A stretch of DNA of 64,000 bases from Eutreptiella sp. 'Long Island Sound 2002'. Taxonomy: Eukaryota; Protista; Euglenida. The DNA lies in contig OZ038378.1 in assembly GCA_964036045.1 (NCBI GenBank), forward strand, positions 58,094,001 to 58,158,000, given 5' to 3'. A program made the translations under genes and the position numbers. The notes beneath the pieces are model-generated. The model had not been told where the DNA came from. It worked only from the letters and a program-made list of their open reading frames with translations, and did not search any database. This document shows, piece by piece, positions 1 to 28,372 of this stretch. Within the stretch, counting starts at the first letter, position 1, and every line of letters starts with the position of its first letter.

Positions 1-116
1 GGGGGGGGGGGGCAAGGTGCACTTTTGAGGTAGAGCAGAATTAGAGCACCTTGCATTAACTAGTTAGAGCAAAGTTAGAGCACTAGTTATCACGCGATAA
101 CTCAGCTATCGCGTAG

Positions 117-1873
117 TTATCGCAGGTAGTCATCGCGCACCCCACCCCCACTCCTGAGTGGAACAAACAACACAAAACACTTGGCACAAAGCATTGTTTG
201 ATGAATGTTTGAGGCCTTCTCTGCCTCAAGTCCCAAAAGCCCTTGCTCACGGGCCGTCAAACTCCTGCAATGGTGCATATGTTGCACCGACAAACTTCGT
301 GTCACCAAAGACCAACCTTGGAAGCAATTTTGGAGCCTTCTCTTGTAACTGTAACGTGTAAGGCCCATGTTTGTATTTTGTGGGGATGGAGGATAATTGA
401 AAAATGTTTCTCCACTTCTTCGCAAAAAAAATAGAATGTGCCAAGCACCAGTGAATCCCCCTAGTCGGGGACCAACCTGAATCTCCCCAAGCTTTGGAAA
501 ATTTTGTGGTAACCACACGATGGTGTTCCGATGGGTTACAATGTAAGCACCCGTCACCCTCCAAAGGTCATACAAACACTCAATGCATTTTACCATGACA
601 TGCACAACAACCCACAATGGAGGTCCACTAGGGGTCCTCACTAAGGGCATATGCTCTTTGAGGCAATCCACAAATTTGCCTTTGGAGGGGGGGGGGGGCT
701 TGAGGAACGCTTTGGTGCTCGTAACATCCTTTTCCTTCACCCTTGACGGCTAGGGGCGACGTTCCCTCGTAAGAATGCCGGAGGTCTCATCCCTGAGTGC
801 CCGTTTGAAGGCGTGCTAAGCTGCAATAGCTTGGGTTTTACCCATGGTTCCGGGGGTAAGGCGTGAAGGGTGGTCTCAGTGCGTTTTGCAATGCCATTTA
901 GGATTCGGCATGCAGCATGTTTGTAGTTACCGGTCCACGTGGTTGGGCTGATGCTTCTCAGAACTGCCTGCCATCTGGAGGTGGACCCCACCTCCTTTTC
1001 CTCAACAATACCATTGGGATCCCTGCACAACCAACACTTACAGCTAGCCCCACCCATTGTTTGCATCCCTTTTCCATCCCCAGTCAAAATAACAATGCAA
1101 GTCAAAAATTGGTATTGACATTGTAGGATTGCCTCCTCCACATCCTTCACCTCTTGATGGTGGTTTGCGGAGACATCAATGCTTCTTGAAAAAGCTTGTT
1201 CATCCCCCCCATCCATGCAAACCATGTGGACCATAGCTTCACTTTGGATGCAAACTTCAACCCCCCCCCCCCCGTACATTGACCCATACATCTACACGGT
1301 TCAAGTATGCCTTCCAACGGGAAGTTGCAAACGGAGAAATTACCACAAGGGCAACGCCGCTATGGGGGGGGGTCCCAATAACTCGACCCATGCAAAGTAC
1401 AAAATTGACAATAGATTGTAAAGGGACATGGGCAGCTGCCCTATTACGGCCCGTGGAGGACTTTGCAATAGTTGCTTGGGGAAAGTATCACAATACCCTT
1501 TTCTGAACGGTCCTTAGGTCCGGTTGGGTACAAGGTCGTGGCATCGGCAAAACAACCCGTAAAAATGCATGCGACATGCCATGCGTAGCATGCTCAAGGC
1601 CTCATGCTCAGCTGCAAGTGCAAGATGCCCACCAAGTGGGGAGGAGAGGGCAGTGGAGGCCCCAACACTTAAACAAACTTCTTCCTTGGTGTTGGTGACA
1701 CATATGAATTTGGGATCACCCAGAAGAACTCAAACCAACATCTGAACCACCGTTAAGCGCCGCCGGCGGGCCTTGGGGGATTGCAACTCTGTGTAGCGCC
1801 ACATGTAAACTTGGTATACAACGCTTAGGGCATCATTCATAGAAGTGTCCATGCGGATCAAGATGCTGTGCAT
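117..1873 (-). pseudogene. DDE transposase remnant, RAG1/Transib/CMC-like
   Basis: Minus-strand frames give VILTGDGKGMQTMGGASCKCWLC (D codon 1076-1078, CxxC 1025-1036), NYKHAACRIL (917), QHMHHC and QGLLGLEAEKASNIH (~200-245). This order matches the D..CxxC..HxxxR..H..E motifs of RAG1/Transib-type cores. Frameshifts and stops are present. Confidence 0.6.
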
Positions 1874-1914
1874 GGGAAATGAGGGATGGATGTGATGCAG
1901 GTGCCCAAAAAACA

Positions 1915-2119
1915 CACACGATAACCCACACGAGAACTCGTGCTCTAACTAGGTATCGTGCGCTAATCCCTATGATGATCCCCGCGATAGCTTAGTTAGA
2001 GCGCGATAACCCCCAGCGATAACTAGTCAGAGCACCCAGTTAGAGCGCGATAACTGCCGCGATAAGCAGTTAGAGCATGGGTTAGTGCGCACTAGCTAGA
2101 GGGGTTAGTGCGCCCTAGG
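1915..2119. promoter_or_regulatory. Intergenic GCGATAAC/TTAGAGC motif cluster (between dioxygenase gene and transposase)
   Basis: Dense degenerate repeats (cgcgataac, agttagagc, tagtgcgc). On the minus strand they are followed by a pyrimidine-rich stretch and the ATG at 1873. Homologous clusters lie at 28-123, 5941-6078 and 19546-19643. Confidence 0.55.
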
Positions 2120-3900
2120 CTACCTGAAACCGAGGTGAACAAGCCGCTGCCGCCACATAGCCGTGCAATGAGGCAACCCGCTTGCACTGTGGAAGATCAC
2201 ATTCCATCGCTCACCCGCCCATGGCAAAGGAGAATGTAGTGCCTGGGTATTGAACAACACTGGGACTTGTGGTGTGGCCTTGCATGCTCAACCCACACCT
2301 TGAGATCCTTGTGCACACGCGCGTGCCGCTTTTTGTCCCTAAGGGAGGGATTCAACAGACCACCACTCTCCACCCAAAAATATCCTCCCGTGAAAGACCC
2401 CCCCACACACAATCGGCGCCGTGGGCATCCCATCACGCAAATGGGCGTGAAGGCCCATGGCGACACTCCCTTGCGTACACACCATCCGGATGCTACACCA
2501 TGTGAATCATGGTGGAGCATTCACATTGCAGTACTCATTGAGGTGTGCAACCAAGGGGGCGGTGGGGAGGTCTCAAGGGAGCGGCAGCCACCTTGGGGGT
2601 CATAAAATTAGAGGGGTGGGGGATGCAGCTTCCCACTAGGCCCAAGTGGCACATGTCCACTCGGGCCCCATATCTTTGATCCCCCCAGAAAATCCCCTTA
2701 GGCACCCCCCTTGACCAAATCGAGGAGTCATTCACTGGCACTCCTGCGGCTGGCGGTACCGTGACTTTGAACCCCTTCCTAAGCGCGAAATGTGGCACTG
2801 AGGGTGGACGGCGGGCCACCCACGTGCGCCTTGGCCACGCCTAGCCGCTGCATGAGGTCTTCCTTGGCCTTTTGCAATATCTCCACCTCCACCCTCAACC
2901 CTTCCGCCTCCATTTTGGCCTTTTGCCGCCCCTCGATTGCTTCCTTTAGGTCATCCCTCAACCCGTGGATCCCCACCCGTCTCTTGTGCACCACTTGGAG
3001 GCCACAGTCAAGGGCAGGGTGTGTGTTGCCTTGTGGCTTATCCACCTTCGAAAGCTGCGACATGCTTTCGGCATGCCCTCCCTTGGTCAGTGTTGTTCCA
3101 CCCTTGCGACGGCAGCTTGCTCAACAAGAGTTTGGCAAGCGTCCGTCGCGTGGTTGGCCACATTGTGGGCCAAGGCCCTCACATCAAGGGTGGTGGGAGG
3201 GGGGGCTGGGCCTGCACCGTGGGCACCTTCGCTCGTTTGGGGGAAGGGGTGACTAACCTAACCCAAAGGGGGAGGCCTCACCCTCCTCCACCACCACCAC
3301 CTCCCCTCCTTGGCACTTCGTTTTGCGGGCCTCACCCCCTTGGGGCGGTAGGCTAGCACCCACAATGCCGTGGCATGGCGGACACTTTGGGGGGGGGGGG
3401 TACTCCCCCCAGCTAGAGGATGTCCGACCCCCGCTGCAGCAGCTTGTGCCACACCTCCCGCCCTGCTTAATTCCCCTGTCTTCCGACACAAAGCACAACC
3501 GGCGGAGGAAGTAGCTCATCCTTTGGGGGGGGGGGGTCGGACATACCAAAGAGGCACAAGGAGGCGGCGAGCGTCTCCCCCTCTGGCAACTTTGGCTAAT
3601 TGGCCAGGGGCTTCCCCCCGCCCACCCAGACGTAGGAGGGGAGGGTGAGGTTGGTCTTCCTCTTCACGTCCCCTTCTTTTTCCAAGATGGTTGCCTTGTG
3701 GTACCATCCTGTACCTCCCTGCCGGCACTCCTCATCCCCCGGCTCCCCCCACCACCAGGGTGCCCCCTCCGGCAGCTTCTTGATCTCCTACATCTGCAGC
3801 TCCGCACGGGCCGCCACCCGCTTGGCTGCCAGTACTCGTCGTGCTCGAGCTGCTCCCGTTGCTGCTGCGGCGGCTACCTCGGCCACGTCCTTGGAGAACA
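2120..3900 (-). pseudogene. Cargo gene Y: Tudor-like segment + coiled coil + C-terminal TET/JBP-like 2OG-Fe(II) dioxygenase domain (2120-2506)
   Basis: Translation across frameshifts: FTWCSIRMV..GLHAHLRDG..IVC.GSFTGGYFWVE...VPVLFNTQALHSPLPWAGERWNVIFHS...LVHLGFR* (stop 2120-2122). This shows an HxD-like segment, the GG-xW strand, a distal His and a G-x-R 2OG-binding strand. Coiled coil LRDDLKEAIEGRQKAKMEAE at ~2850-2990; GWYHKATILEK at ~3680-3710. Confidence 0.65.
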
Positions 3901-5879
3901 GGACTTGCCTCCAGTCCACCACCTGTGCCAACCCCTCGAGCTCCGGGGGGACCCGGGCCACTCCCGCATACATTCCCCTCCTCAGCATCAATATGGTGTT
4001 CGCCGGCACCTTAATTCCAACATGATCCTGCAAGCTGTGCCACGGCACTCCCGCCCCATGGCACACCTTGGCTAGGGGGTGCCGGTCGGGATGGCCTCCC
4101 ACCCCCCCCCCCCGGCCCCTCCACAAATAACGCCCGGTGCTTGTCCCCACCGGGAGCAAGCATTGAGCACATTGCTCAATGCTGACCCCATTTGGGTCCC
4201 CGCGCCCACCTCCCCCTCCGGCCCCTCCACGTCCCCCCCCTCCTTGCACGGCACACAATTCCCATCTTTGTGTGCCGCACACAAACCCGCCCGGCGCCCG
4301 GCCGCACCTCTAGCACTTGGCTACGACCTTCCCCCTGCACCTAACCCCCCCCCTTGACACGTGAGCGCCTTGGCACCCGGGCCTTCATGCGACCCCTTGT
4401 GGGGTCGCTTGATGGCTAAGGTGACATGGAGGTTGGGGAACTCAGGTTATGGCCTTGGATTAGCTCAATCGCAAAAAATTCCATGAGGCGGGGATCGGAC
4501 ACACCGCTGGGCGAGGGCTTTGGAATGCCGGACCCTCGGTGAACAGCAAGGGCATTGAAAAGAAACGCAGTGCCACAACCCTTCCCACCCAAGGGTCAAG
4601 TGACCCAAAACTGATTGAGGGGACGAAGAGAAAATGTGAGCCAGCCTCGGCCTCATGATTATGCATCAGAATAATTAATCATTTAACAATCTATGTGCCC
4701 TCAGGCACATTGTGTGTGGGGCGGGGGGGGGGGGGGCACCGCGATACAGGTGCTGCGGGATGTGGTCATAGCTCGAGATTTCGGCCATGTCCAGCACCAT
4801 GCAGCTCCACCCAACCCCTCCCACCAGCCCCTTCTTCGTCGTGTGGCCGACACGATGTGCGATTCTTTTTGACGACCGGCACATCGTGCATTGTACGGGG
4901 GTTGTGCTTGTAGTGATGGCGGCCCCCATAGTTGCCATAAATAGTGCGACGGGTGCCTGAATCCTTGGGCCTGGCCACAACAGGGGGGTTACCGTTGAAA
5001 ATGAACACCTTGTCCGTGAATGGCATCCTCGCAAGCTCTTCCAACAAAATCTCGCGCTACACTTGACTCAAAAATTCATGCTTGAGCAAGTGGTTCAGCA
5101 CCAACGTGTCTGCAATGGTGACCACGAGATCGTTTGGATCCCGATTAAAGGACCCGATGGGCTCCGCCATATCCACTTATTCGGCCTCCCCAATAAGGGG
5201 AGTTGTTGACCCCAAAGGAAAAAACATCACCTCTTGCCCTAAGATAATCTTTGGTGACTCCATACTACTCACGCTCCCCCTCCCTTGTGTCGAACAGGGA
5301 GTGGATAGGGAGCTTGGTTTCTGGGTCGTTAGTGTAGACAAGGCGGGTGTTGCGGCTGAAGGGTTGGGGAAACCAATCATCCGTCTTCCCCTTCCCCTTA
5401 CCCAGTCCAATTCTTGCGTTTTGCACACTAATCATGAGGGGGTGGTGGGGCTTGCCCTTCCCCCCCCCCCCACACCTCCTCCTCACCTTGCTCCTCCCCT
5501 TCGTCCTCCTCCTCCTCCTCCTGAACCTGATAGAGGCTGGTCTTTGTCCCCACACCCTTGTCGGCGTGGGCCGTGACGGACTCCACCACCACCTCCATGT
5601 CTTGGGGATGCAGCTGGATCAAAAATTCATCATCCCCTCAATTGATCTCCCACAACTCAAAAAATGTAGTTGCTGAGAACCAGGGGATCCTTGTTTTCGA
5701 CCATGAAAGGCGGACTTATGGATGATCAGTCCAAAGTCCACACGCTTCTCAAAATGACTAGCTACAGGGTGCCTCACCGAGGTGTCACACATCGTAAGCC
5801 CCTCGCGTATGCGAAGGCGATTAATCCCAACGAGCTTTTGATGGCGCTTGCACCAAGCATCAGATCGGGCAAGGGCCAT
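3901..5879 (-). pseudogene. Cargo gene X: chromo-like/acidic N-terminus + 2OG-Fe(II) oxygenase-like domain + Cys-rich C-terminus
   Basis: VVESVTAHADKG...LYQVQ (chromo-like, ~5525-5600), then an E-rich run. Oxygenase-like core WSCMVL..YDHIPQHL ... EAEAGSHFLFVP ... (copy 2: VPFRKGTAFFFNALDVHRGSG) ... PRL at 4460-4870. CxRC and CAQC motifs at ~4150-4330. ATG at 5879 follows a pyrimidine tract and AG (5881-5882, 5897-5898). Confidence 0.45.
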
Positions 5880-5940
5880 ACTAAAGAACGTCAGACCTAA
5901 GACGAAGAGGGGAAACATGGAACAAGAGCAGACGAATGGT

Positions 5941-6102
5941 GATAACCTCTGCGATAACTCGTGCGATAACCAGTTTGCGCGCGATAACTACCGCGATCAA
6001 CCACTCGATAAATGAGTTATCGCGCGATAACCCCCGCGATAAGTAGTGCAGGAACCCCGTTCTAACTAATTAGAGCACAAAAAGACCACATCGCCAAAAG
6101 TG
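5941..6102. repeat. Right terminal motif cluster / imperfect TIR of the transposon
   Basis: About eight GCGATAAC-type units, the perfect palindrome GTTATCGCGCGATAAC at 6016-6031, and terminal CAAAAGTG. Confidence 0.7.
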
Positions 6103-6324
6103 CAAAACGGGCAATATTGAGCAAAAGAGACATGCAAGGCACATTGTTGCATCATAGTGCACCCATGTAACACATAAAACTCCGGGTTCCAACCATATCA
6201 ACCACCCCTAAACGTGGGAGGGTTTCGCACTAAGCTTTAGAGCGGCAGATCATGTACCATGGGGGGCTGAGGCTGTTATTCGTGGCCCCATGCGGCATAC
6301 CACTCCACACCAAGAATTGACCCA

Positions 6325-8445
6325 TCAGCAAGTGTCGTTGAAGGAGTAGTTCCTCGGACAGTTCCACTCGGCATCGATGATCTGCATGAGGGTTTTCTTG
6401 TCTCTTGACGCAAGGCTTTCGAAGGTTTCTGGTGCATTTGTGAGTTGTATGTGAGTCGCGATTCGTTGAACGAGTTCTCCGATTTTTTCGTCTCGTTCGT
6501 TTGTGATGAATTCTCGCGTGTGGGTGGTGGGGTTTTTGATGGAGAGACGGAGGTATTTGGGGTAGTCCGTGTTCAGTAGGTGGACATCAGGTCGTTGGAT
6601 CGAGGACGTCATCAGTGAAGGAAACATCGTGAAGCTAAAGACCAGGGTGTTGGTCAAGGGAATGTCCGCAACATCTACTCTCCACGGCCAGTGGGTGACC
6701 AGTGGTCGCGGGTTGGGAGAATGCCCACAAATGCCATGGAAATAGCCCACAATGGCTGGGACGATGATGGCCCTCTTGAGGGTTGGTGAGAGATCGGCGA
6801 AGTCCTCGGGTCGCATTCTTTGATGGATTCGATAAGCAGAGTTGTGTACACGGTATTGCTGAGAGAGGAACTGGCATACTTTAGTGGACTCCGGGGTTCT
6901 GGCCTGGCAGCTCCGACTTTTTGTTGGTTGATGACCGTTTCGGATCATTTGTCGCCATGGACTTGCGGATTGAGATGCATGAGGTAGATTCTTGGTTACT
7001 CCACTGTTTTGGTTGGATTGCATGTGATGCTGATTGATCACCTCATATGTGATTGATAACCTTGATCACCATGTGCACTATTGGCTAATGTCATTTTAGC
7101 ATTGCGGAGTTTCTTCTTTCTTTGGTTTGGGGGATTGTGGTCGACTGTTTGGATTTTGGAGGGGCTCCTGCAGAGGACGTTATTGTTGTTGTGCTCTGGT
7201 GATCGCCGAGATTTGCGTGGTATCGTTGAACTGTGCGTACCACGTGCGGTATGAGTCTACCTAGATACGTTTGGATGGTGTGCCTGTGTCACCCGCATGC
7301 ATGGCTGCTAGGTTGTCCGAAATGGCACTCTTGATTCGGCTTGGATTGATTTTGAAGCGGTGGATGAGCAGCTTGTTGAGGACCTTATCGCACCATTCGG
7401 CTATCCCACTGCCGTCTCCTTTGCATCTTACTGCAGAGCTGGCTTTTATGGCTACTCGATTGCTCTCAATCAAAAGTGCGGACCATGCATGGTCATCGTT
7501 CTCTTTTGATCTGCCTGACATGATGATTAGGTATCCTTCGGGAGTGTGCAGTACTTCGATTCAGATGGGGCATTCTGTGAGGTTTGCCGGGAGGTAAAAG
7601 GAGACGTCATGCTGAGCCATCCATTGTTGCGCATTGAACCAGTTTGGAAGGGGTGGGGGGTGCTAGGCTTGAGGTACGGCATGATCGTTCGTGCGGTCTC
7701 CCTAGTGTACGTGCTTTTGCTGTTGCAAGAAAGGAAGAGGCTTTTGATAGGCGGGACAATACATGGGGGATTGCAAATCTGATGTCATCGAGGCCTGCCC
7801 ATAGCATCTTACTCGGGGTGCGCACAGGGATGCATAGCGCTTTGAAGGCTGTTCTCTTCATTTGTTGTGCTTGTACCCATTCGGCTTGCATTGGGATCGC
7901 CGAGGGCACGTAGTCTACCACGGACAGGGTGTACGTGATCACGATGCGCAACATGAGTACAAAGGAGGGTTGCGGTTGTGCGTGATTTCCTTGCAAGATA
8001 CAGAGGCTTTTTACGAACTTCAAAGTGGGTTCTTTGGGGATCTCTCCTCGGATGAGGGGGATGCCGCTCATCTTCAGGTCAAATTTCTAGAGGGTGAACA
8101 TGTCTTGCATTGTCTCCACTTCGCCATCAACATATTGCAATCTGCCATTTTTTGGTTCTGCTCCGTACATTTTTACGTTCTTGCACTCCGATGATCCTCC
8201 TCTTGACCAACAGCCGTGGCTTAATGTGTTCTACATGTGAGCCATGTGTTGAGGATGCATGGTCGCGAAACCTTTGCCATCATCGCTGTATACGATTTCA
8301 AGCAGTTTTACACTTGGGTCCCATGGGCTAGCTAGACTTTTGTACGTGTGGCGCTCGGCCCGGGGTGAGAGGTCTAGTGGATTCTTGTGTTGTAGAAGTA
8401 CTCCTTGGTTAAATTTGGTGCAAACACACGTTGTGGTGGCGTACT
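6325..8445 (-). pseudogene. RT catalytic/thumb and C-terminal part of LINE ORF2
   Basis: YSDD at 8279-8290; fragmented ORFs 7607-8071, 7261-7521 and 6325-7041. Segment 6103-7207 is duplicated at 21968-23072. Confidence 0.6.
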
Positions 8446-10365: not shown

Positions 10366-10910
10366 AACTGGGTGTTACGGGGTGGGCATGCCGAGCGGGC
10401 GTCTGATTGTATTCATTCTGCATCTCGGCGTAGAGCCGTATCGTTTGTGAGTGGATGTCTTTCGTTGTTGGGGTTCTTGCTGCCGTGTTCGGGAATCTTC
10501 CTTAGAGTTGGAAGGGGCCTGTGAATACGGTGCAGGCTAGGGCCATTTGTGCGGTTATTGGTGATTCCTTCCGTAGGTGCCAGGAAGCTGGGATTCTGTG
10601 CTTGATGAATGTGGTAGAGAGGGATGAGTGCGCTGTCATGGAGTAGCCCGACACCTTGCCACATTGATGATAGGAGGGACCACCGATCCAAATAGCCTTT
10701 CTTTGTGGTTCGCAGTTCCTAGTGCTGAGAGCATGATAGCCCTAAGACTCGTACTGAGAGTAGTACTGTGTTATGTTGTGGTGGCCTGCTTGAGGTCGAA
10801 TGACACACTTGCACGAGATCAACAATGCATTGTTGAGGGATACTATTGGGTTGGAGGGTGTGTACGCTTTCTTGTGCTTGCGCGCTGATTCAACGCAGGC
10901 TTGGACCCGT

Positions 10911-13497
10911 TTTTATGAGTGTATGTGTTATGGACTTCCCCCACCCCACCCCCACTTTGGTGTCCCTTGGATGGGACACACGCATGAATTTTTTTGTTCT
11001 AGTTTTGTTCTAGGCTAGAATGTTCTAGCGACATTCTAGCGAACAAGCTAGATGGGCGCTAGGTCGGCGCTAGCACACTTTTTTTTGTTTTTGGTTTGGC
11101 CTCGGAAATGTGTTTTTCTGACATAAAAGATTTGGACCCCGTAGTATGCTACGGGGCCCCCAAGTTCCAACATTGATATCACCGAATTCCCCCACCCACG
11201 GGTTGGGGTAAACCCCGCTTTTTTTCCGTTGTAGCCCTCTAGCGCCATCTAGGCCAGAACGAAATTGGGTCTTCTAGTGTATTCCTAGGGCATCGGATCT
11301 AAAGCATGATCCCTTACTCGAGGATGCGCCGGAACTCTTGTCCAAAGACCATCACAAACCGTCATATGGTTGCACAAAATGTGGTATAACTGCCACACAT
11401 AATAAGGATAGAAGATGCAGCTGCACCGACACTACCTTATGTTCCATACCCTGCCTCCGCCCCGTACACTCGGCAACGGCAGCCGTGAACATCCTGCACA
11501 ATCTCACCCCCCTTCCGCCACTACCGAATACAGCAAATTTGGTCATCACCTCCCATGTACGCATCATCCACGGCTCCACACAACATAGGTTCGGACGGCA
11601 CAGTAGTACAACACACAATCCCACACCATAGGCACACACAGCACGCAGGAGGGAAGGAGTAGCACACCTACCTATTGGTGTCAATGTGTACTCACTTCTT
11701 CAAATTCAATAGATTTTAAAAAAAATCACGCCTACAAAAAGGAAATGGATACCCTCCCTAAGCTGAAGTACAACAAGCAAGGTAGCCCCAAAACCAAGAC
11801 CACAACATGGAAGCGGGCGGGGGGGGGGGTGGATAGCTCAACCTTCAGGGGGTGCTTGTGTGGTGCTTGTGTTTCCCCTCTTACCACACCCTCCCCACCC
11901 TTGACATCTTATGTTGTGTGTTGTGTTGTGTGTATGTGTATGCCAAATTGTGTGTCCGGGGGGGGGGGGGGCACATATGCATAGGCATGCAGCAAGTCTA
12001 GTAAGGGGCACAGTGAATAACCCAAGTGGGGCGGTGGGCAAGGGAGGAGGGATGGTGACAAGGGGGGGGGGCGTGTACACTAGAAAATGCCACACCGTAG
12101 GCACACACAGCAGGGAGGTGGGAAGGAGTAACACACATACCTCTTGGTGTTTATGTGTACGCACCTCTTCAGATTCAACAAGTGCAAAAAAGAAGCATGC
12201 CATCAAGGTGGTATGCTTTGTCCCCCCTCCTCCCAGTTTATGGAATCGCCCCTCCGCCCTGTGTGCAGTGGTACCTGGCTTGTTGGTTCGTTGGCTTGGT
12301 CTTCGGGTTGCTTGGTTGGTTGTTGTTTGATTGGTTTGTAGCCTGCTGAGTTCGGCTGCCTGGTTGGTGGTAGGTAGGTTGTTTGGTTGGTTGGTTGGTT
12401 GGTTGGTTGGTTGGTTGGTTGGTTGGTTGTTGGCTCGTTGCTGGGGTGCACTTGTGTGTGCACAGGTGCTGTAGAACGCCAAGTGTTGGGTGGGATGTAT
12501 GTGTGTGTGTTGCTTGGTCACATGCTGTGTGGTCTTGTTGCATAGTGTGTCTGTGCGGAAGCATGTTTGTGCAGCCATTGCAAAGGTTTACGGGGGGGCA
12601 GTGCACATTTCATTTTGGCGTTCCCGCGGCGTTCTAGCGGCGCTACTTGGCTTGCTACAGCGCCGCTAGAGCAGCTCGCTAGAACGCTGCTAGAATGCCA
12701 AAACAAAATGTGTCGAGCCCCACCAAAGGCCTTTGCAATGGCTGCACATGCATGCTTACACACAAACACACTATGCAACGACCCCACACATCATGTGTCC
12801 AGTCAAAATGCACACATACACCCCAGCAACTAGCCAACAACAACCCAACCATCCACCAATCCAACCAACCAACCAACAAACAAACGTGCCAAACTCAAGT
12901 GCCCGCGAGCCAATGAACCACCAACCAACCAATCAACCCCACAAACCAACAGCCAACAAAGGAATGCTGCAAGTTGCAATGCACGTAGGGGGGGGGGGGG
13001 GGGTATCCATAGCCTGGAGGCGGGGGGACAAAGCATACTACAGGTAAACAGACACCGCCCGGTAAAGGAAATTGATATCATCCATAACCTTAAGCACAAC
13101 AAGCAAGGTAGCGCAAGAACCAAGACCACAACATGCAAGCGGGGGGGGGGGGCTGATAGCTCAACACCCAAGGGGTGTTTGTGCGGAGCTTGTGTGTGGC
13201 CTCTTACCACTCCCTCTCCACCCTTGACATCTTATGTTGTGTGTTGTGTTGTGTGTATGCCTATGCCAACCTTTGTGTGTGTGTGTGGTGGTGGTGGGGG
13301 GGGCACATATGTGTATGCATGCCTCAAGTCTAGTGGTTTTTATGAGTGTATGTGTCATGGACCTGCCCCCCTGCCCAACTGATTTGTTATTGGTGTTCTA
13401 CGAATTCTACCTGTCTAGGGTAGAACAAATGGTGTTCTAGGCAGAACGCTGTAGCGCGTTCCGGGCTAGAACGAAATCAGGTTTTGTAGCGTGTTCC
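10911..13497. repeat. Composite insertion with CTAG-rich motif clusters, direct repeats and a central inverted repeat
   Basis: Direct repeats 11744-12003 ~ 13070-13333 and 10911-10945 ~ 13337-13370. Inverted arms ~12350-12625 and ~12690-12900. CTAGAAC/CTAGCG clusters at ~11000-11075, 11235-11290, 12630-12695 and 13395-13497. Confidence 0.65.
12384..12428. repeat. (GGTT)n microsatellite
   Basis: Pure tetranucleotide run. Confidence 0.95.
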
Positions 13498-15879
13498 TAC
13501 GTGAACAGTTGTTGGACCAATTTTGCAGCTCGGTGAGTACGCTGGAGACCGTTTGTCTGTTCGATGTTCTTTTTTTCGGGAGACTATCAAGGATTGCTAT
13601 ACAGAGGGCGGCCCAGGAGGTGGCTTCGCGGGGGAGTATGACGGGTAGTCATTTGTGCCCCCTGCAGCACTCCTCGGGCCGCACGAATGGACATCGAGGA
13701 GCCTGTTACCTTCGATTCGGGCAGTTCTTCGTGATTGTCAGGGGCTGCTTTGTCTGCCCTAGGTGGCTGCTGGTTGGGAAGTGCGTTCTGCACGATGGGA
13801 ACCTCGAGGGCTGAGCCGGAAGAGCCTGAGTACTGTAGACATGAGGAAAGTATGACGGCCTGGGATGAGTTGATGAGATCGCTTGAGAGGTTAGGGTAGG
13901 CATGTGCAGCATCGGGTTGTGCATTGGATATTGGTAAGGGGGCATCATAGGAGGTAGCATAGGCATCATAATTGGTTGTAGCGTCATGGGTTGCGTGGGT
14001 GTCTGAATATCCGCGAGCGTTGAAGGAGGCGGTGGGTGGGGCATCGGTTGAGCCGTATTCTCTATCCTCCTCCTCTTGGCTGAATTGAGGGGCTCGTAGG
14101 GTTGACCTTTCATGTGCTTCAAGTGGATACCCATGAACTTGATGTCCCGGATTGGGATCCATGCTGTGTCTTTTCCTTCGGACACTACATACCAGTTTGC
14201 AGGGTTGACGTTGTTGATGAGCCAGAAGTTCATTTTCACAGCGCTGCGAGATAGGCCTGTGTTTGGGCCACATCTTTGATGGATCGCTTCCTCCGGGTTC
14301 TTTAATGGTGCATGTTTCGGCGTAGTGAGCATGAGCGTCAACCGTAGACCTTGCGCCTGCATTTCCCTTTCCGTTCTGTGCCGGTGGGGCTTGTGGTACA
14401 GGGAAGGGCAAGAGTGAGGTTTTGTGCTCTTGCGGTCTCTAGTGGAGGTACTAAGATTGATTGGTTTGAGGTGTTCATTTGGGTTGACGGTAGGCGATGT
14501 TTGTGAGGGGAGGTGCATTGGGGGTGGTGTTCAGCGATGTGTAGCTGTAGATGGTGTTCTGGTGTTTGTAGCTGTGTTTGAGTTGCTGTGGGTGGTTGAC
14601 TGGGCATGGGAGCATTCACTTCTTCTGCCAGCACCCATTGATTGATCAAGTCCGGGGTTTTGGTGAATGACTGGGCTCCGAGGGATTTGACTTCTTCTCT
14701 GACGATGCGAAATTTTTCAGGACCCGGGGTGGTTGTCAGGTTGCGGATGAATGCATTACACCATTGCGCCGCGTTCTGTACTGAGATGAGGTTGAGGCGG
14801 GGGCTTTCGTCGGAGTGCGGAAGAGAGGGTGGTGGCCGACATGGCCCGATTTTGCCTCCTTCAGTATTGATTGCCACATGGATCGACATGAGTTCGCCCA
14901 ATTGTTTCTCGGCATGCCGAGTGCCTTGGTTGCCGTGCGACAGCATGTATTTCAACGAGTCTTGGAGGGCCTTGGATGCAGCAATTATATCCGTTGTGAG
15001 GGCGCACACGTCTGCCTTGAGTAGCGTGCCTATCTGTCTCCCTTGGTTTACTTGGACTAAGAAATTCTGGGCTTTGGCTCCAGCCTTGATCTAGTGGAAT
15101 CTCATTGTCCGGCAGCCAGCTGGCAGTCACAGTCGTCGAGTTCGTTGCACTTGTTAGCAATTTGTCGTACGATCTCTTCATGTTGAGCATAGGAGTTGAT
15201 TGGGTGGGGATGATGTGGCTGAAGCGGCGAGATCGGTTGGTACGGCGGGGTTCCTTGGGGGAGGGATGCGAGGAGGTAGAGTGTGGTGCCCACTGTGCCG
15301 GTCGGGACTGACGGGTTCAGGATGTTGGACCATGAGATGCAAGTCTTCGGTGGGGAACGTGGGAGGAAACGAGTGCGAGAGGAGCAGAGGGGTCCGTGAA
15401 GGCGAACGGTTTCTGTTTGTAGTAGTGTAGTCCGGAGATGCGCGGGCATCGTTGAATCGGCTGAATGTGGGGTGGACACACTTGGTTTTACTGTCATTCT
15501 GGCGATAGCAACAGATGCTTTGAGTGAGTGGTCCAGCATCGCTTGATTGTTCGGTTTGCTTGCATGAAATTATGGGTATGGGATGCGGTGTTCCAAATCA
15601 TCGTGCGGAACCCCTAGTTGGAGCACAATTTCTAGAACACCCGTCAAGCCCTATTTCTGGTGCAACCACCCAACAAAACGGATTCGGCACCCTCATAAAC
15701 CCCCCATCCCATCTCGTTTCCCAAGGTATCCTCATTATGGCGGTGGTTTTCGAAGGGGGGGGGGGGGGCAAGGTACACTTTTGAGTTAGAGCAGAATTAG
15801 AGCACCTTGCATTAACTAGTTAGAGCACAGTTAGAGCACTAGTTATCACGCGATAACTCAGTTATCGCGTAGTTATCGC

Positions 15880-17439
15880 GGTTAGTTATCGCGCACCCCA
15901 CCCCCACTCCTCAGTGGAACAAACAACGCAAAACACTTGGCACAAAGCATTGTTTGTGTTTCTTCACACAAAGTCAGGAATGTTTGAGGCCTTCTCTGCC
16001 TCAAGTCCCAAAAGCCCTTGCTCACGGGCCGGCACACTCCTGCAATGGTGCATATGTTACACCGACAAAATTCGTGTCACCAAAGACCAACCCTGGAAGC
16101 AATTTTTGAGCCCTCTCTTGTAACTGTAACGTGTAAGGCCCATGTTTGTATTTTGTGGGGATGGAGGATAATTGAAAAATGTTTCTCCACTTCTTCGCAA
16201 AAAAAGTAGAATGTGCCAAGCACCAGTGAATCCCCCTAGTCGGGGACCAACGTGAATCTCCCCAAGCTTTGGAAAAATTTGTGGTAACCACACGATGGTG
16301 TTCCGATGGAATATAGTGTAAACACCCGTCACCCTCCAAAGGTCATACAAACCCTCAATGCATTTTACCATGACATGCACCACAACCCACAATGGAGGTC
16401 CACTAGGGGTCCTCACTAAGGGGACATGCTCTTTCAGGCAATCCACAAATTTGTCTTTGGAAGGGGGGGGGGTTTGAGGAACGCTTTGGTGCTCGTAAGA
16501 TCAAAGTCGTTTTCCTTCACCCTTGAGGCCCAGGGGCGACGTTCCCTCGTAGGAATGCCGGAGGTCTCATCCCTGAGTGCCCGTTTGAAGGCGTGCTAAG
16601 CTACAATAGCCGCACCCATTGTTTGCATCCCTTTTCCATCCCCAGGCAAAATAACAATGCAAGTCAAAAATTGGTTTTGACATTGTAGGATTGCCTCCTC
16701 CACATCCTTCACCTCTTGATGGTGGTTTGCGAAGACATCAATGCTTCTTAAAAAAGCTTGTTCATCCCCCCCATCCATGCAAAACCATGAGGACCATAGC
16801 TTCACTTTGGATGCAAACTTCAACCCCCCCCCCCCCCCGTACATTGACCCGTACATCTACACAGTTCGAGGATGCCTTCCAACGGGAAGTTGCCAACGGA
16901 GAAATTACCACAAGGGCAACGCCGCTATGGGGGGGGGTCGCAATAACTCGACCCATGCAAAGTACAAAATTGACAATCGATTGTAAAGGGACATGGGCCG
17001 CTGCCCTATTGCGGCCCGTGGAGGACTTTACAATAGTTGCTTGGGGAAAGTATCGCATTACCCTTTCCCAAACGGTCCTTAGGTCCGGTTGGGTACAAGG
17101 TCGTGGCATCGGCAAAACAACCCGCTAAAAATGCATGCGACATGCCATGCGTAGCATGCTCAAGGCCTCATGCTCAGCTGCAAGTGCAAGATGCCCACCA
17201 AGTGGGGAAGAGAGGGCAGTGGAGGTCCCACCACTTAAACAAATTTCTCCCTTTGTGTTGGTGACACATATGAAGTTGAGATCAGCCAGAAGAACTCGAA
17301 CCAACATCTGAAGCGCCGTGAGCTGCCGCCGGCGGGCCTTGGGGGATTGCAACTCTGTGTAGCGCTACATGTAAACTTGGTATACAACACTTAGGGCATC
17401 ATTCATAGAAGTTTCCATGCGGAACAAGATGCTGTGCAT
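15880..17439 (-). pseudogene. Transposase remnant, copy 2 (CxxC/HxxxR block deleted)
   Basis: ILPGDGKGMQTMG is retained. The sequence then jumps at a TAGC microhomology (~16607-16610) to the downstream region. Confidence 0.55.
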
Positions 17440-17685
17440 GGGAAATGAGGGATGGATGTGATGCAGGTGCCCAAAAAACACACACGTTAACCCACACGAG
17501 AACTCGTGCTCTAACTAGGTATCGTGCGCTAATCCTTGTGATGATCCCCGCGATAGCTTAGTTAGAGCGCGATAACCCCCAGCGATAACTAGTCAGAGCA
17601 CCCAGTTAGAGCGCCATAACTGCCGCGATAAGCAGTTAGAGCATGGGTTAGTGCGCACTAGCTAGAGGGTTTAGTGCGCCCTAGG

Positions 17686-19494
17686 CTACTTGAAACCGAG
17701 GTGAACAAGCTGCTGCCGCCACATAGCCGTGCAATGAGGCAACCCACTTGCACTGTGGAAGATCACATTCCACCGCTCACCCTCCCATGGCAAAGGAGAA
17801 TGTAGTGCCCGGGTATTGAACAACACTGGGACTTGTGGTGAGGCGTTGCATGCTCAACCCACACCTTGAGATCCTTGTGCACACGCGCGTGCCGCTTTTT
17901 GTCTCTAAGGGAGGGATTCAACAGACCACCACTCTCCACCCAAAAATCTCCCTCCCCGAAAGAACCCCCCCACACACACAATCGGCGCCGTGGGCATCCC
18001 ATCACGCAAACGGCCGTGAAGGCCCATGGCGACACTCCCTTGCGTACACACCATCCGGATGCTACACCATGTGAATCATGGTGGGGCATTCACATTGCAG
18101 TACTCATTGAGGTGTGCAACCAAGGGGGCGGTGGGGAGGTCTCAAGGGAGCAGCAGCCACCTTGGGGGTCCTAAAATTAGAGGGGTGGGGGGTCCAGCTT
18201 CCCACTAGGCCCAAGTGGCACATGTCCACTTGGGCCCCATATGTTTGATCCCCCCAGAAAATCCCCTTAGGCACCCCCCTTGACCAAATCGAGGAGTCAT
18301 TCACTGGCACTCTTGCTGCTAGCGGTACCGTGACCTTGAACCCCTTCCTGAGCGCGAAATGTGGCACTGAGGGTGGACGGCAGGCCACCCACCTGTGCCT
18401 TGGCCACGCCTAGCCGGTGCATGAGGTCTTCCTTGGCCTTCCGCAACGTCTCCACCTCCACCCTCAACCCTTCCGCCTCCATTTTGGCCTTTTGCCGCCC
18501 CTCGATTGCTTCCTTTAGGTCATCCCTCAACCCGTGGATCGCCACCCGACTCTTGTGCACCACTTCGAGGCCACGGTCAAGGGCAGGGTGTGTGTTGCCT
18601 TGTTGCTCATCCACCTTCGAAAGCTGCGACTTGCTTTCGGCATGCCCTCCCTTGGTCAGTGCTGTTCCACCCTTGCGACGGCAGCTTGCTCAACAAGAGT
18701 TTGGCAAGCGTCCGTCGCGTGGTTGGCCACAGTGTGGGCCAAGGCCCCCACATCAAGGGTGGTGGGAGGGGGGGCTGGGCCTGCACCGTGGGCACCTTCG
18801 CTAGTTTGGGGGAAGGGGTGACTAACCTAACCCAAAGGGGGAGGCCTCACCCTCCTCCACCACCACCACCTCCTCCTCCTTGGCACTTCTTTTCGTGGGC
18901 CTCACCCCCTTGGGGCGGTAGGCTAGCACCCACAATGCCGTGGCATGGCGGACACTTTGGGGGGGGGGGGGGTACTCCCCCCAGCTAGAGGATGTCCGAC
19001 CCCCGCTGCAGCAGCTTGTGCCACACCTCCCGCCCTGCTGAATTCCCCTTGTCTTCCGACACAAAGCACAACCGGCGGAGGAAGTAGCTCATCCTTTGGG
19101 GGGGGGGGTCGGACATACCAAAGAGGCACAAGGAGGCGGCGAGCGTCTCCCCCTCCGGCAACTTTGGCTAGTTGGCCAGGGGCTTCCCCCCGCGCACACA
19201 AACGTAGGAGGGGTGGGTGAGGTTGGTCTTCCTCTTCACGTCCCCCTCTTTTTCCAAGATGGTTGCCTTGTGGTACCATCATGTACCTCCCTGCCGGCAC
19301 GCCTCATCCCCCGGCTCCCCCCACCACCAGGCTGCCCCCTCCGGCAGCTTCTTGATCTCCTACATCTGCAGCTCCGTCCGGGCCGCCACCCGCTTGCCTG
19401 CCCGTACTCGTCGTGCTCGAGCTGCTCCCGTTGCTGCTGCGGCGGCTACCTCGGCCACGTCCTTGGAGAACAGGCGCGGCAGCTGGGGGTTCAT
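17686..19494 (-). pseudogene. Cargo gene Y copy 2 (TET/JBP-like dioxygenase at C-terminus)
   Basis: Starts MNPQLPRLFSKDV after a motif cluster and pyrimidine tract. The C-terminal domain carries a GDFWVE strand and VPVLFNTRALHSPLPW-E-G-E-R-W-N-V-I-F. Stop at 17686-17688. Confidence 0.6.
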
Positions 19495-19545
19495 GTCCCA
19501 TGGGCGAAGAAGGAATGCGCCAAAAAACAAAAAAAACCACGCGAT

Positions 19546-19643
19546 AACTCGCACAATAACCCGCGCGATAACTTGTTAGAGCACCCAGCGAGAGCGCAAC
19601 AACTACCGCAATCACTAGTTAGAGCAGGAGTCAGTGTGCACTA
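19546..19643. promoter_or_regulatory. Intergenic GCGATAAC/TTAGAGC motif cluster between genes X and Y (absent from copy 1)
   Basis: cgcgataacttgttagagcacccag...ctagttagagcag..tcagtgtgcacta aligns with 2024-2095. Confidence 0.55.
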
Positions 19644-21744
19644 TTCACACCTGGTGAAAGGGGCACATTCTTTGCCCGCTTCCTTCTTGGGGTCATCCGG
19701 CACGAGGTTCATCTGCTGCAGCCACACGAAGTCCGTCACGGCGCATACTCCTCGACTTGCCTCGAGTCCACCACCGGTGCCAACCCCCCCAGCTCCGGGG
19801 GGACCCGGGCCACTCCCCCATACATTCCCCTCCTCAGCATCAATATGGTGCCCGCCGGCACCTTAATTCCAACATGATCGTGCAAGCCGTGCCACGGCAC
19901 TCCCGCCCCATGGCACACCTTGGCTAGGGGGTACCGGTCAGGATGGCCTGCCACCCCCCACCCCCCCGGCCCCTCCACAAAAAACGCCCGGTGCTTGTCC
20001 CCACCGGGAGCAAGCATTGAGCACATTGCTCAATGCTGACCCCATTCGGGTCCCCGCGCCCACCTCCCCCTCGGGCCCCTCCACGTCCTCCCCCCCCTTG
20101 CACGGCACACAATACCCATCTTTATGTGCCGCACACGAACCCGCCCGGCGCCCGGCCGCACCTCTAGCACTTGGCTACGACCTTCCCCCTGCACCTAACC
20201 CCCCCCCCCCTTGACACGTGAGCGCCTTGGCACCCAGGCCTTCATGCGACCCCTTGTGGGGTCGCTTGATGGCCGAGGTGACATGGAGGTTGGGGAACCT
20301 CAGGTTATGGCCTTGGATTAGCTCAATCGCAAAAAATTCCATGAGGCGGGACCGGACACACCGCTAGGCGAGGGCTTTGGAATGCCGGACCCTCGGTGAA
20401 CATCAAGGGCATTGAAAAAAAACGCAGTGCCCTTTCTGAATGGCACAACCCTTCCCATCCAAGGGTCAAGTGACCCGAAGGTGATTGAGGGGACGAAGAG
20501 AAAATGTGAGCCAGCCTCGGCCTCATGATTATGCATCAGAATAATTAATCATTTAACAATCTATGTGCCATTAGGCACATTCTGTGTGGGGCGGGGGGGC
20601 ACCGCGATACAGGTGCTGCGGGATGTGGTCAGAGCTCGAGATTTCGGCCACGTCCGGCACCATGCAGCTCCACCCAACCCCTCCCACCGGCCCCTTCTTC
20701 GTCGTGTGTCTGACACGATGTGCGATTCTTTTTTATCACCGGCACATCGTGCAATTTACGGGGGTTGTGCTTGTAGTGGTGGCGGCCCCCATAGTTGCCA
20801 TAAATAGTGCGACGGGTGCGTGCATCCTTGGGCCTGGCCACAACGGGGGGGTTACCGTTGAAAATGAACACCTTCTCTGTGAATGGCACCCTCGCAAGCT
20901 CTTCCAACAAAATCTCGCGGTGCACTTGACTCAAAAATTCATGCTTGAGCAAGTGGTTCAGCACGAACGTGTCTGCAATGGTCACCACGATATCGTTTGG
21001 ATCCCGATTAAAGGACCCGTTGGGCTCCGCCATATCCATTTTTTCGGCCTCCCCAATAAGGGGAGTTGTTGACCCCAAAGGAAAAAAAAATCACCTCTTG
21101 CCCTAAGATAATCTTTGGTGACTCCATACTACTCACGCTCCCCCTCCCTTGTGTCGCACAGGGAGTGAATAGGGAGCTTGGTTTCTGGGTGTTCAGTGTA
21201 GACAAGGCGGGTGTTGCGGCTGAAGGGTTGGGGAAACCAATCATCCGTCTTCCCCTTCCCCTTACGCGGTCTAATTCTTGCGTTTTGCACACTAATCATG
21301 AGGGGGTGGTGGGGCTTGCCCTTCCCCCTCCCCCCCCCACCTCCTCCTCCCCTGGCTCCTCCCCTTCGTCCTCCTCCTCCTCCTCCTGAACCTGATAGAG
21401 GCTCGTCTTTGTCCCCACACCCTTTTCGGCGTGGGCCGTGACGGACTCCACCACCACCTCCATGTCTTGGGGATGCAGCTGGATCAAAAATTCATCATCC
21501 CCTCAATTGATCTCCCACAACTCAAAAAATGTAGCCACTGAGAACCAGGGGGTCCTTGTTTTCGACCATGAAAGAGGGACTTATGGATGATCAGTCCAAA
21601 GTCCACACCCTTCTCAAAATGACTAGCTACGGGGCGCCTCACCGAGGTGTCACCCATCGTAAGCCCCTCGCGTCTGCGAAGGCGATTAATCCCAACAAGC
21701 TTTTGATGGTGCTTGCACCAAGCATCAGTAGCGGCAAGGGCCAT
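19631..21744 (-). pseudogene. Cargo gene X copy 2 (2OG-Fe(II) oxygenase-like)
   Basis: FIFNGNPPVVARPKD..YGNYGG..; WSCMVPDV..SDHIPQHL; EAEAGSHFLFVP; VPFRKGTAFFFNALDVHRGSGIP; ends ..KECALSPGVNSAH* at 19631-19633. Confidence 0.45.
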
Positions 21745-23946
21745 ACTAAAGAATGTCAGACCTAAGACGAAGAGGGGAAACATGGAACAAGAGCAAACGA
21801 ATCGTGATAACCTCTGCGATAACTCGTGCGATAACTAGTTTGCGCGCGATAACTACCGCGATCACCCACTCGATAGCTGAGTTATCGCGCGATAACCCCC
21901 ACGATAAGTAGTGCACGAACCCCGTTCTAACTAATTAGAGCACAAAAAGACCACATCGCCAAAAGTGCAAAACGGGCAATATTGAGCAAAAGAGACATGC
22001 AAGGCACATTGTTGCATCATAGTGCACCCATGTAACACATAAGACTCCGGGTTCCAACCATATCAACAACCCCTAAAAGTGGGGGGGTTCCGCACTAAGC
22101 CTTAGAGCGGCAGATCATGTACCATTGGGGGCTGAGGCTGTTATTCGTGGCCCCATGCGGCATACCACTCCACACCAGGAATTGACCCATCAGCAAGTGT
22201 CATTGAAGGAGTAGTCCCTCGGACAGTTCCACTCGGCATCGATGATCTGCATGAGGGTTTTCTTGTCTCTTGACGCAAGGCTTTCGAATGTTTCTGGTGC
22301 ATTTGTGAGTTGTATGTGAGTCGCGCTTCCTTGAATGAGTTCTCCGATTTTTTCGTCTCGTTTGTTTGTGATGAATTCTCGCATGTGGGTGGTGAGGTTT
22401 TTGATGGAGAGCCAGAGGTATTTGGGGTAGTCCGTGTTCAGTAGGTGGACATCAGGTCGTTGGATCGAGGACGTCATCAGTGAAGGGACCATCGTGAAGC
22501 TGGGGACCAGGGTGTTGGTCAAGGGAATGTCCGCAACATCTACTCTCGACGGCCAGTGGGTGACCAGTGGTCGGGGGTTGGGAGAATGCCCACAAATGCC
22601 ATGGAAATAGCCCACAATGGCTGGGACGATGGCGGCCCTCTTGAGGGTTGGTGAGAGATCGGCGAAGTCGTCGGGTTGCATTCTTGGATGGATTCGATAA
22701 GCAGAGTTGTGTACACGGTATTGCTGAGAGAGGAACTGGCATACTTCAGTGGACTCCGGGGTTCTGGCCTGGCAGTTCTGACTTTTTGTTGGTTGATGAT
22801 CGTTTCAGATCATTTGTGGCCAGGGACTTGCGGAATGAGATGCATGAGGTAGATTCTTGGTTACTCCACTGTTTTGGTTGGATTGCATGTGATGCTGATT
22901 GATCACCTCATATGTGATTGATAACCATGGTCACCATGTGCACTATTGGCTAATGTCATTTTAGCATTGCGGAGTTTCTTCTTTCTTTGGTTTGGGGGAT
23001 TGTGGCCGACTGATTGCATATTGGAGGGGCTCCTGCAAAGGACGTTATTGTTGTTGTGTCTTGGTGATCGCCCAGATAGGGCAGAGATGACCATATTTTT
23101 GACAGGTTGTGCGGGGCATTGCTCGGGAGAAGGACCTATGTAGTTTGCATTCTGACACGGGAAGCGAGAGCAAGTTGCCCACAACTGGCGCCGCACCAAT
23201 TCTGTGGGGCTTTCATTTCGGCAGTGGGTTCAGGTATGCATTAAGGGGAGGTTTGTGCTGACTTGATGATGGATGCTGCTTTCCATTGAGTGTGACCCCA
23301 GTGGCACGGACATTGAGAATGGAGGGTTTGCAATGTTCTATAGTTCTTTCTTCCTTTAGGGTGATTGGAGTCAACTGTTTGCATGCCAGCGGGTGTCCTG
23401 TTGAGGACATCATTGTTCCTATGTTTGAGTGTGCGCTAAGATAGGGCAAGAATAACCATATTTTAAGTTCGTTGGTCATGTTTGTTTTCAGCGGGGCATC
23501 TGTTTCGAGGGGGGATCTATGTTGTACAAGTTTAGATGAGAGCAGGGGGAGCTGGTTACTCACAGCTAGCGCTGTTCCGGCTCCATTAGACTTTCATTGG
23601 GGCCGGGGAAGTATGCATGGAGAGGAGGTGTGTGCATTCTGATGGCTGACATGATTATCAGTATGCTAGAGTGAGCACCGAGGATGGGCATAGAAGACCA
23701 TACTTCTGGTTGGTTGTTGGTTTTGGCTTTCACTGGGAGCTTCGTTAGGAGGACGGATGTATATTGTCCGAATTTAGTCACCGTAAGAGAGAGTAGGTTG
23801 CCCAGAGCTGGTGATGTTGTAGTTCTGTTGGGCATTCATTTGGGCTCATGGTTCAAGTACGCTTAATGAGAGCATCATTGCTTTCTGATGGCTACCACTA
23901 TTCATGGCGGTGAGCTGCGTGCTGCTAGTGCTGACATGTTCTGTTC

Positions 23947-28164: not shown

Positions 28165-28372
28165 TTGTGTTGTGTTGTGTTGTGTTGTGTGGTGTGGTGT
28201 TGTGGTGTGGTGTGGTGTGTGGTGTGGTGTGGTGTTGTGTTGTGTTGTGTTGTGTTGTGTTGTGTTGTGTTGTGTTGTGTTGTGTTGTGTTGTGTTGTGT
28301 TGTGTTGTGTTGTGTTGTGTTGTGTTGTGTTGTGTTGTGTTGTATTGTGTTGTGTTGTGTTGTGTTGTGTTG
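28165..28372. repeat. (TTGTG)n pentanucleotide microsatellite
   Basis: About 40 units with a few TGGTG variants. Confidence 0.97.

Follow-up and report, generated by a model that had tools for sequence, protein, structure and literature searches.

The 64,000-nucleotide window analysed here (contig OZ038378.1 of assembly GCA_964036045.1, positions 58,094,001 to 58,158,000) very probably harbours a dead cut-and-paste DNA transposon with three genes. It belongs to a large family whose members combine a transposase of predicted RAG1/Transib-type fold with oxygenase-type cargo encoded by two further genes, here called Y and Z. The two copies of the element in the window are dead family members, and their value lies in the family, not in the locus. 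Mobility is shown by intact relatives, by an empty site and by hundreds of copies in the same assembly. A preliminary description of the window had already proposed a multi-gene DNA transposon bounded by terminal inverted repeats (TIRs), with three co-oriented broken genes at about 20-6102 and a second copy. These features stand, the genes being on the minus strand and the second copy (15757-22000) being 92-96% identical, and the transposon is borne out by a shared 35-bp TIR, by independent copies with different flanks and by the empty site.

An element family defined by independent copies

The window was compared with independent loci of the same assembly (L002-L005 and L008) and with two unrelated contigs (L006 and L007). 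The protein domains discussed below are detectable only in intact relatives from the same assembly and not on the open reading frame (ORF) pieces of the window itself. Forty stop-free pieces from both strands and both copies had no match in Pfam, while the positive controls in the same window, RVT_1 and the inositol-phosphate synthase domain, matched normally. Searches of the pieces against the Atlas and PDB sequences were uninformative, and a 153-aa ORF of copy 2 had no homologue beyond its own twin. It was suspected from these blank searches that the domains were imaginary, an idea that was dropped after intact relatives had been found. The search for intact copies that the preliminary description had advised was successful, recovering from the same assembly an intact 552-aa transposase ORF (L003:11104-12762) and an intact 679-aa gene Z ORF (L002:223-2262).

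Complete elements are 6.4-7.3 kb long and have 35-bp inverted repeats at their termini. The family TIR, GGGATGCAGCGTTCTAGGGCGTGGTGCGGAACCCC, begins with TGGGATGCAG and is flanked by T...A in every case, and the element termini read 5'-TGGGATGCAGCG...CGCTGCATCCCA-3'. It is found at both ends in L003 (5804/13143) and L004 (6485/12915), and at one end only in L002, in L005 and at window position 15580. Colinear homology to complete relatives places the true extent of copy 1 from 181 bp before position 1 to position 6253, both of these ends, like those of copy 2 at 15580 and 22118, having degenerate versions of the TIR. The ends had previously been set at positions 20 and 6102, on the 9-bp repeat GCACTTTTG/CAAAAGTGC. 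This sequence match is real, but it is subterminal, since homology with L002 extends past both positions, by about 200 bp at 20 and by about 150 bp at 6102, and independent copies are homologous further out to the 35-bp TIR. The left-hand 9-mer is absent from L002, and the right-hand one (6094-6102) lies inside the element, just outside the motif array at 5941-6061. At L003, an uninterrupted paralogue of the flanks of the insertion (L003:18478-18557) represents the empty site. A target duplication of 2 bp is consistent with L004 (CA) and window copy 2 (TA), i.e., with two of the three junction pairs on which this estimate is based.

The family is abundant, with protein clusters of 235, 114, 69 and 58 members, and thousands of fragments at 85-100% identity are present in Logan contigs of public runs, which come from an estuary metagenome and from two organisms. 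In all complete copies seen, genes Y and Z are situated between the 35-bp TIRs, as the preliminary description had supposed for its oxygenase genes. Deletion derivatives without the 4-kb Y-Z block also occur (Logan joints 1937->6016 and 2012->6023), and in one relative, P0015, the beginning of gene Z is joined to the transposase end, which indicates that the whole 6 kb form one unit. Logan word depth along window positions 150-6149 varies from 33 to 128,000 in one run, and the motif arrays described below, together with spots near 591, 2355, 4145 and 5384, are common to far more abundant repeats. A G/C run of 11-21 is found about 170 bp inside the transposase-side terminus (window 1-12 and 15757-15769; L002:11276-11286). 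Near another family copy, a piggyBac-type transposase fragment (L005:15414-16049; Pfam DDE_Tnp_1_7) was encountered, and the genome is transposon-dense.

A transposase with a predicted RAG1/Transib-like core

Among 20-27 homologues with 30-99% identity, the transposase has the ordered conserved motifs DATPLW, LTGDGKGM, KCWxC, WxHWxxxHS and SSIPTExRNxxFK, an order equivalent to D, D, C(2)C, H(4)H, E. Such a signature defines RAG1 and the CACTA/Mirage/Chapaev/Transib (CMCT) group of DDE transposases (Yuan & Wessler 2011; Kojima 2025, PMC12730594). A full HMMER search with 740-1291 (minus strand) retrieved 66 homologues, including full-length proteins of 540-576 aa at 30-37% identity. For the 210-aa ORF at 120-749 (minus strand), 36 homologues were obtained at 42-51% identity, all of them in assemblies of ENA, and their alignment reveals the frameshift of the window copy.

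Pfam, PHROGs and NCBIfam did not recognize the transposase protein, and its profile had no match among PDB sequences, the fold search alone being successful. An AlphaFold model built from 27 sequences (predicted local distance difference test, pLDDT, 74.7; predicted template modelling score 0.67) was compared with the PDB by Foldseek, and the top 48 matches were all RAG1, BbRAGL from amphioxus or HzTransib, with E values from 2e-10 to 2e-5 and template modelling scores of about 0.5 over about 580 columns; the next match, at 4e-3, was P element transposase. Motif signature and predicted fold bear out the RAG1/Transib/CMC-like transposase of the preliminary description, and both support membership of the CMCT clade with a RAG1/Transib-like core. 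The element does not look like a Transib proper, as the TIR is not CACAATG-like and no 5-bp target duplication was seen. Of the features typical of CACTA/En-Spm elements, the termini are not CACTA, and subterminal arrays of short repeats are present.

Gene Z codes for a predicted PhyH-type dioxygenase

Gene Z seems to code for an N-terminal region, an acidic tract, a 2-oxoglutarate/iron(II) [2OG-Fe(II)] dioxygenase of the PhyH type, a Cys-rich segment that is weakly IBR-like (E = 0.1) and a β-rich C-terminal domain. The intact L002 protein matches PhyH below the Pfam threshold (E 0.023, nearly the whole profile) and also 2OG-FeII_Oxy_3. On L006, a contig of 64% GC that was assembled by MEGAHIT from another sample, the transposase homologue P0087 is followed by a 529-aa homologue of gene Z (25% identity over 410 residues, BLASTP E 9e-25). 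This ORF (L006:3195-4781) passes the Pfam model PF05721 (PhyH) with 27.9 bits against a cut-off of 22 (E 3.4e-6), covering profile positions 2-204 of 213. The assignment of gene Z to PhyH is transitive via L006, because the close members from L002 and L003 reach only 15-16 bits, below the cut-off. The iron ligands H-x-D...H are kept between L002 and L006 (LHRD/WHRD and VHRG/IHRG) and lost in the window copy, and the L006 homologue retains WHRD, IHRGGG and the Cys-rich block. Gene Z is regarded as securely predicted to code for a PhyH-family 2OG-Fe(II) dioxygenase, which supports the second oxygenase-like gene with a Cys-rich segment of the preliminary description. The chromo- and Tudor-like segments that had been ascribed to the same gene had no Pfam match, by profile search only, in the intact 679-aa protein or in pieces of it.

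In L006:1-4782 (ENA ERZ27267618, k141_659199), the transposase homologue that precedes the gene Z homologue has 569 aa, and an ORF with a CCHC zinc knuckle is located at the 5' end. L006 and L007 were inspected for a spliced leader or a poly-A tail and neither was found.

Gene Y combines a coiled coil with a dioxygenase-like domain

Intact gene Y consists of an N-terminal region, a proline-rich linker, a coiled coil, an in-frame stop and a domain of 210 aa. The stop is common to L002, L003, L004 and both window copies, in subfamilies that are 25% apart in their DNA, and could reflect read-through, an intron or two cistrons. The C-terminal domain belongs to the cluster of 235 members and gave 109 matches, all within ENA. 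In the window, its motifs are GLHAHLRDG...FWVESGG...LFNTQALHSPLPWAGERWNVIFHS; H-x-H (in GLHAHLRDG) occupies the position where H-x-D is expected, and the distal LHAPLP and RWSVIFY are present. Its protein-language-model embedding in the Atlas (recognition 2502; 0.96, 215/256 features in common) places it beside 'Fe2OG dioxygenase' clusters, and families of the P4H, Tet_JBP and AlkB types follow further down among the neighbours. The domain is probably an oxygenase-like double-stranded β-helix fold with an unusual H-x-H motif.

Motif arrays precede each gene

The motif GCGATAAC occurs 23 times in the window against 0.85 expected matches, and its clusters lie only at the element ends and at gene boundaries. 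The intact element in L003 has four arrays with a spacing of about 12 bp, two of them subterminal and inverted and two internal, one directly upstream of gene Y and the other directly upstream of the transposase gene. Of the 36 motif matches in the 20.6-kb L003 locus, none lies outside the element.

Selection and ancient linkage

Despite the decay of the window copies, dN/dS (nonsynonymous over synonymous substitution rates) over pieces of all three genes between subfamilies is 0.11-0.51. For in-frame pieces of the window compared with the L002/L003 subfamily by the Nei-Gojobori method, it is 0.11-0.42 for the transposase and 0.13-0.51 for gene Y, rough values, given that local alignment is biased towards segments that are better conserved. 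Even so, they speak for three genes that were all functional, under purifying selection, while the family diversified. On an unrelated contig, transposase and gene Z are still linked at 25-35% protein identity, so that a functional requirement seems more plausible than a chance capture.

Duplication and decay of the window copies

Self-comparison showed that window 1-7212 recurs at 15757-23077 with 92-96% identity and with length differences of 215 bp and 280 bp. The similarity between the two units passes position 6102 by 1.1 kb, to 7212/23077. On the other side, at least 5.2 kb upstream of the window, taken from a contig around one window ORF (L001:15027-20261; ENA assembly ERZ25074135), match window 10530-16610 at 94%. 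The tandem segmental duplication, whose units are 92-97% identical, comprises at least 12.4 kb and has a period of about 15.76 kb; its junction is at 7212/7213 and its second unit ends at 23077. Because the similarity runs past both element ends into the flanks, the two window copies are one insertion that was subsequently copied with its flanks. The earlier statement that the element is present twice holds for the second copy, at 15580-22118, but not for two independent transpositions. In the duplicated flank beside the transposon, a 246-aa open frame is found at 6328-7065 and 22193-22804 (both minus strand); it has no Pfam match.

In copy 1, the first catalytic D is gone (DAT -> PFAT) and the E has changed to K (PTEY -> PTKY). 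The first D is lost in both window copies (PFAT/PLAT for DAT), the catalytic E being replaced by K. Gene Z of copy 1 has lost its 3' end through a 280-bp deletion, and its H-R-D is mutated to Y-R-G (HLYRG). The order of events was a single insertion, then loss of the catalytic D and E and the appearance of stops and frameshifts in all three genes, and finally a tandem duplication of about 15.8 kb that copied the decayed element with its flanks.

Comparison with known transposons and dioxygenases

Dioxygenases carried by fungal transposons all belong to TET/JBP and are distributed over eleven transposon lineages, including the CMCT lineages EnSpm, ESTA and Plavaka, and the ESTA transposase is RAG1-like by HHpred (PMC12730594). 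The pairing of a TET/JBP gene with a RAG1/Transib/CMC-like transposase had appeared to be novel to the author of the preliminary description, a view that is weakened now that TET/JBP genes on fungal CMCT transposons are known to have been described (PMC12730594). In the literature, neither a transposon with a PhyH-type dioxygenase nor the present transposon family was found described. The fungal elements and the present ones are cut-and-paste transposons with a 2OG-Fe(II) dioxygenase gene beside the transposase and a proposed escape from silencing, and several of the fungal ones are CMCT elements. In contrast to them, the present host is not a fungus, the securely assigned dioxygenase is of the PhyH type and not TET/JBP, and there are two oxygenase-type genes with a coiled-coil module, TG...CA termini and a motif array before each gene.

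With Transib, ProtoRAG and RAG1, the transposase has in common the fold of the whole core, the order D, D, C(2)C, H(4)H, E and a distance of about 20 residues from H(4)H to E. However, sequence identity is only about 10-12%, no CACAATG heptamer or heptamer like that of recombination signal sequences is present at the ends, the target duplication is apparently 2 bp and not 5 bp, a RAG2-like gene is missing, and there are three genes instead of one or two. CACTA/En-Spm elements of the CACTA/Mirage/Chapaev (CMC) group resemble the family in their C(2)C and H(3-4)H motifs, in direct and inverted subterminal motif copies, in having more than one gene and in a short target duplication, but the present elements lack CACTA termini, their accessory genes are of the oxygenase type and not TnpA-like, and their transposase does not match the Pfam transposase models.

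As for the carried proteins, the core of gene Z aligns in L006 to almost the entire PhyH profile with H-x-D...H kept; what sets it apart from PhyH is its place within a multidomain transposon protein of 680 aa, close members of which remain below the Pfam cut-off. The gene Y domain resembles TET/JBP (PF12851) in size and motif order, and Tet_JBP clusters are among its embedding neighbours, whereas a profile match and fold evidence are missing and H-x-H replaces H-x-D.

Possible roles of the oxygenase-type proteins and alternative explanations

In the mechanism that we propose, the transposase would bind the TIRs and the motif arrays and would mobilize the element by a nick-and-hairpin reaction of the RAG1/Transib type, leaving a 2-bp target duplication. 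The shared motif arrays before each gene might couple the expression of all three. Most likely, by analogy, the two oxygenase-type proteins, which selection has maintained and which are linked to this transposase across 25-35% protein identity, would act on chromatin or DNA at or near the element to counter host silencing.

Several observations weigh against this interpretation. To our knowledge, PhyH-family enzymes are not known as modifiers of DNA or histones, and the anti-silencing role is suggested solely by analogy with the TET/JBP enzymes of fungal transposons. No transposition, transcription or enzymatic activity has been observed. For the Logan sequencing runs, RNA origin could not be demonstrated, and they gave no usable splice or expression signal. 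The termini read TG...CA, whereas CMCT elements usually have CA...TG, and the L003 junction has GG on one side and two extra bases on the other. The small number of junction pairs, the transitive assignment of gene Z, the roughness of the dN/dS values and the difficulties with the gene Y domain, which are detailed below, count in the same direction.

PhyH-family enzymes characteristically act on small molecules or proteins. It is therefore conceivable, though we consider it rather unlikely, that the oxygenase-type proteins serve transposition or protein modification, with the transposase, a small molecule or a host protein of repair or chromatin as conceivable targets of hydroxylation, and have nothing to do with epigenetic escape. 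The Cys-rich, weakly IBR-like segment of gene Z and the long coiled coil of gene Y suggest protein-protein interaction, and the ancient linkage to the transposase would fit such a role as well. Against it, the sole precedents on transposons are the DNA-modifying TET/JBP enzymes of fungi (PMC12730594).

Somewhat less likely still is that the C-terminal domain of gene Y is a true TET/JBP base dioxygenase, i.e., an oxidase of 5-methylcytosine (5mC) or a thymine hydroxylase, in which case the element would carry its own DNA-modification enzyme. Of the 100 nearest Atlas clusters, 37 are in a set carrying Pfam Tet_JBP, and the structural neighbours of the top Atlas match include Tet_JBP and TET-associated glycosyltransferase clusters. 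Also, the layout F-x-W-C-S-I-x-x-V...G-L-H-x-H...F-W-V...L-H-A-P-L-P...R-W-S-V-I-F-Y recalls the cores of AlkB and TET, and hhalign sets the H-S-H of the domain onto the H-Q-D of E. coli AlkB, albeit with a probability of 0.1. On the other hand, no name is attached to the nearest Atlas clusters, and families of the P4H and AlkB types lie at about the same distance as Tet_JBP. Neither P0108 nor 27 members of the family matched Tet_JBP (PF12851) or any other 2OG model of Pfam even at E<=10, and the domain is blank in PHROGs, NCBIfam, PDB sequences, phage genomes (tblastn) and JGI metagenomes. Its metal motif is not H-x-D, and its AlphaFold model (pLDDT 36) was unusable. The TET/JBP-like label given to this domain in the preliminary description is thus weakened, as it rests only on the embedding neighbourhood, and TET/JBP membership is an unproven lead, not a result.

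A more elaborate version is improbable; according to it, the family would be an undescribed RAG1-fold (CMCT) lineage in a protist, possibly a euglenozoan with base J, with two obligate Fe/2OG oxygenase-type proteins, at least one of which would hydroxylate bases of the element's own DNA (thymine or 5mC) and one of which would be produced by programmed read-through of a stop. If this were true, it would represent a transposon that marks or unmarks itself with its own set of epigenetic enzymes.

It is very unlikely that genes Y and Z are host genes acquired by Pack-type capture, or mere neighbours of the transposase, with no role in the element. Deletion derivatives without the Y-Z block and the fusion P0015 exist, and the window ORFs resemble noise to profile tools. 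Nevertheless, every complete copy seen has Y and Z inside its TIRs, each of the two is preceded by the element's own motif array, dN/dS is 0.1-0.5, and an unrelated contig has the pair of transposase and gene Z again, at 25-35% identity. Finally, that the transposon is a reading artefact, produced by a segmental duplication of ordinary sequence, has next to no probability, for although the two window copies are indeed one duplicated segment and the 9-bp TIR is not terminal, this idea is refuted by independent copies on other contigs with different flanks, the common 35-bp TIR, the empty site and the high copy number.

If the family is a group of oxygenase-carrying transposons, as we favour, the strategy of carrying dioxygenases would extend to a microbial eukaryote distant from fungi and to a RAG1-fold transposase. 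RAG1 is the enzyme lineage behind V(D)J recombination, and the family would widen both the known diversity and the known host range of RAG1/Transib-like transposases. The carried enzyme belongs to a different dioxygenase family (PhyH), accompanied by a second, unclassified dioxygenase-like protein. The family lends itself to studies of the benefit that a transposon draws from an oxygenase.

Table 1. Coordinates of the transposon copies, their predicted genes and associated features (window positions unless a locus is given)
Feature	Position	Strand	Remarks
Transposon copy 1	1..6253, cut by window start	-	colinear with L003:5804-13143 and L004:6485-12915; upstream part on L001
Transposon copy 2, complete, 6539 bp	15580..22118	-	TIRs at 15580-15614 and 22084-22118, 23/35 complementary; TA at both flanks
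Copy 1 TIR, gene-Z side, degenerate	6219..6253	.	24/35 positions agree with family TIR; alignment of ends, TIR scan
Transposase pseudogene, copy 1 (CMCT clade, RAG1/Transib fold, predicted)	190..1852	-	frameshifts, at least 7 stops; tblastn, motif alignment
Transposase pseudogene, copy 2	15967..17418	-	without 215 bp present in copy 1 at 830-1045
Gene Y pseudogene, copy 1	2111..3926	-	tblastn with pieces of gene Y from L003
Gene Y C-terminal dioxygenase-like domain, copy 1	2111..2711	-	at least 2 frameshifts, 4 stops
Gene Y pseudogene, copy 2	17677..19483	-	tblastn
Conserved gene Y stop	L003:9995-9997; L002:8310-8312; L004:9995-9997; window ~2712-2740, 18281-18310	- (window)	
Gene Z pseudogene, copy 1	3902..5879	-	tblastn of intact L002:223-2262; many stops and frameshifts
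Gene Z pseudogene, copy 2	19648..21744	-	tblastn, alignment
Copy-2-only segment: gene Z end and native motif array between Z and Y	19474..19754	.	deletion in copy 1, not insertion
Subterminal GCGATAAC array upstream of gene Z, copy 1	5941..6061	.	motif scan
Internal GCGATAAC/TTAGAGC array upstream of transposase gene	1915..2119	.	direct copy (72%) of gene-Z-side subterminal array
Subterminal GCGATAAC array, transposase side	86..138	.	inverted relative to 5979-6031
Segmental duplication unit 1, part	1..7212	.	partner 15757-23077; reaches at least 5.2 kb before window start

Other features of the window

An Rfam scan of the window gave no match, and a search for the dinoflagellate spliced leader found none. 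At 27372-28524, a 15-bp unit is repeated about 20 times to form a minisatellite, which translates as (TTQHN)n from one strand and as (CCVVL)n from the opposite one. A gene for myo-inositol-1-phosphate synthase (30814-35690 and 35531-53450; Pfam NAD_binding_5, E 3e-58) has introns of about 2 kb; after it comes a tandem array in which a 1643-1669-bp unit containing the 3' end of the gene is present 11 times, with 97-100% identity. At 54644-58561 (plus strand), a retroelement has ORFs of 382, 224 and 766 aa, the middle one matching RVT_1 (E 1e-17). Close to the end of the window (63181-63966), nested inverted repeats with 126-nt arms (63501-63626/63781-63906, 94% complementary) and 52-nt arms (63181-63232/63915-63966) look like a foldback element or one resembling a miniature inverted-repeat transposable element (MITE).

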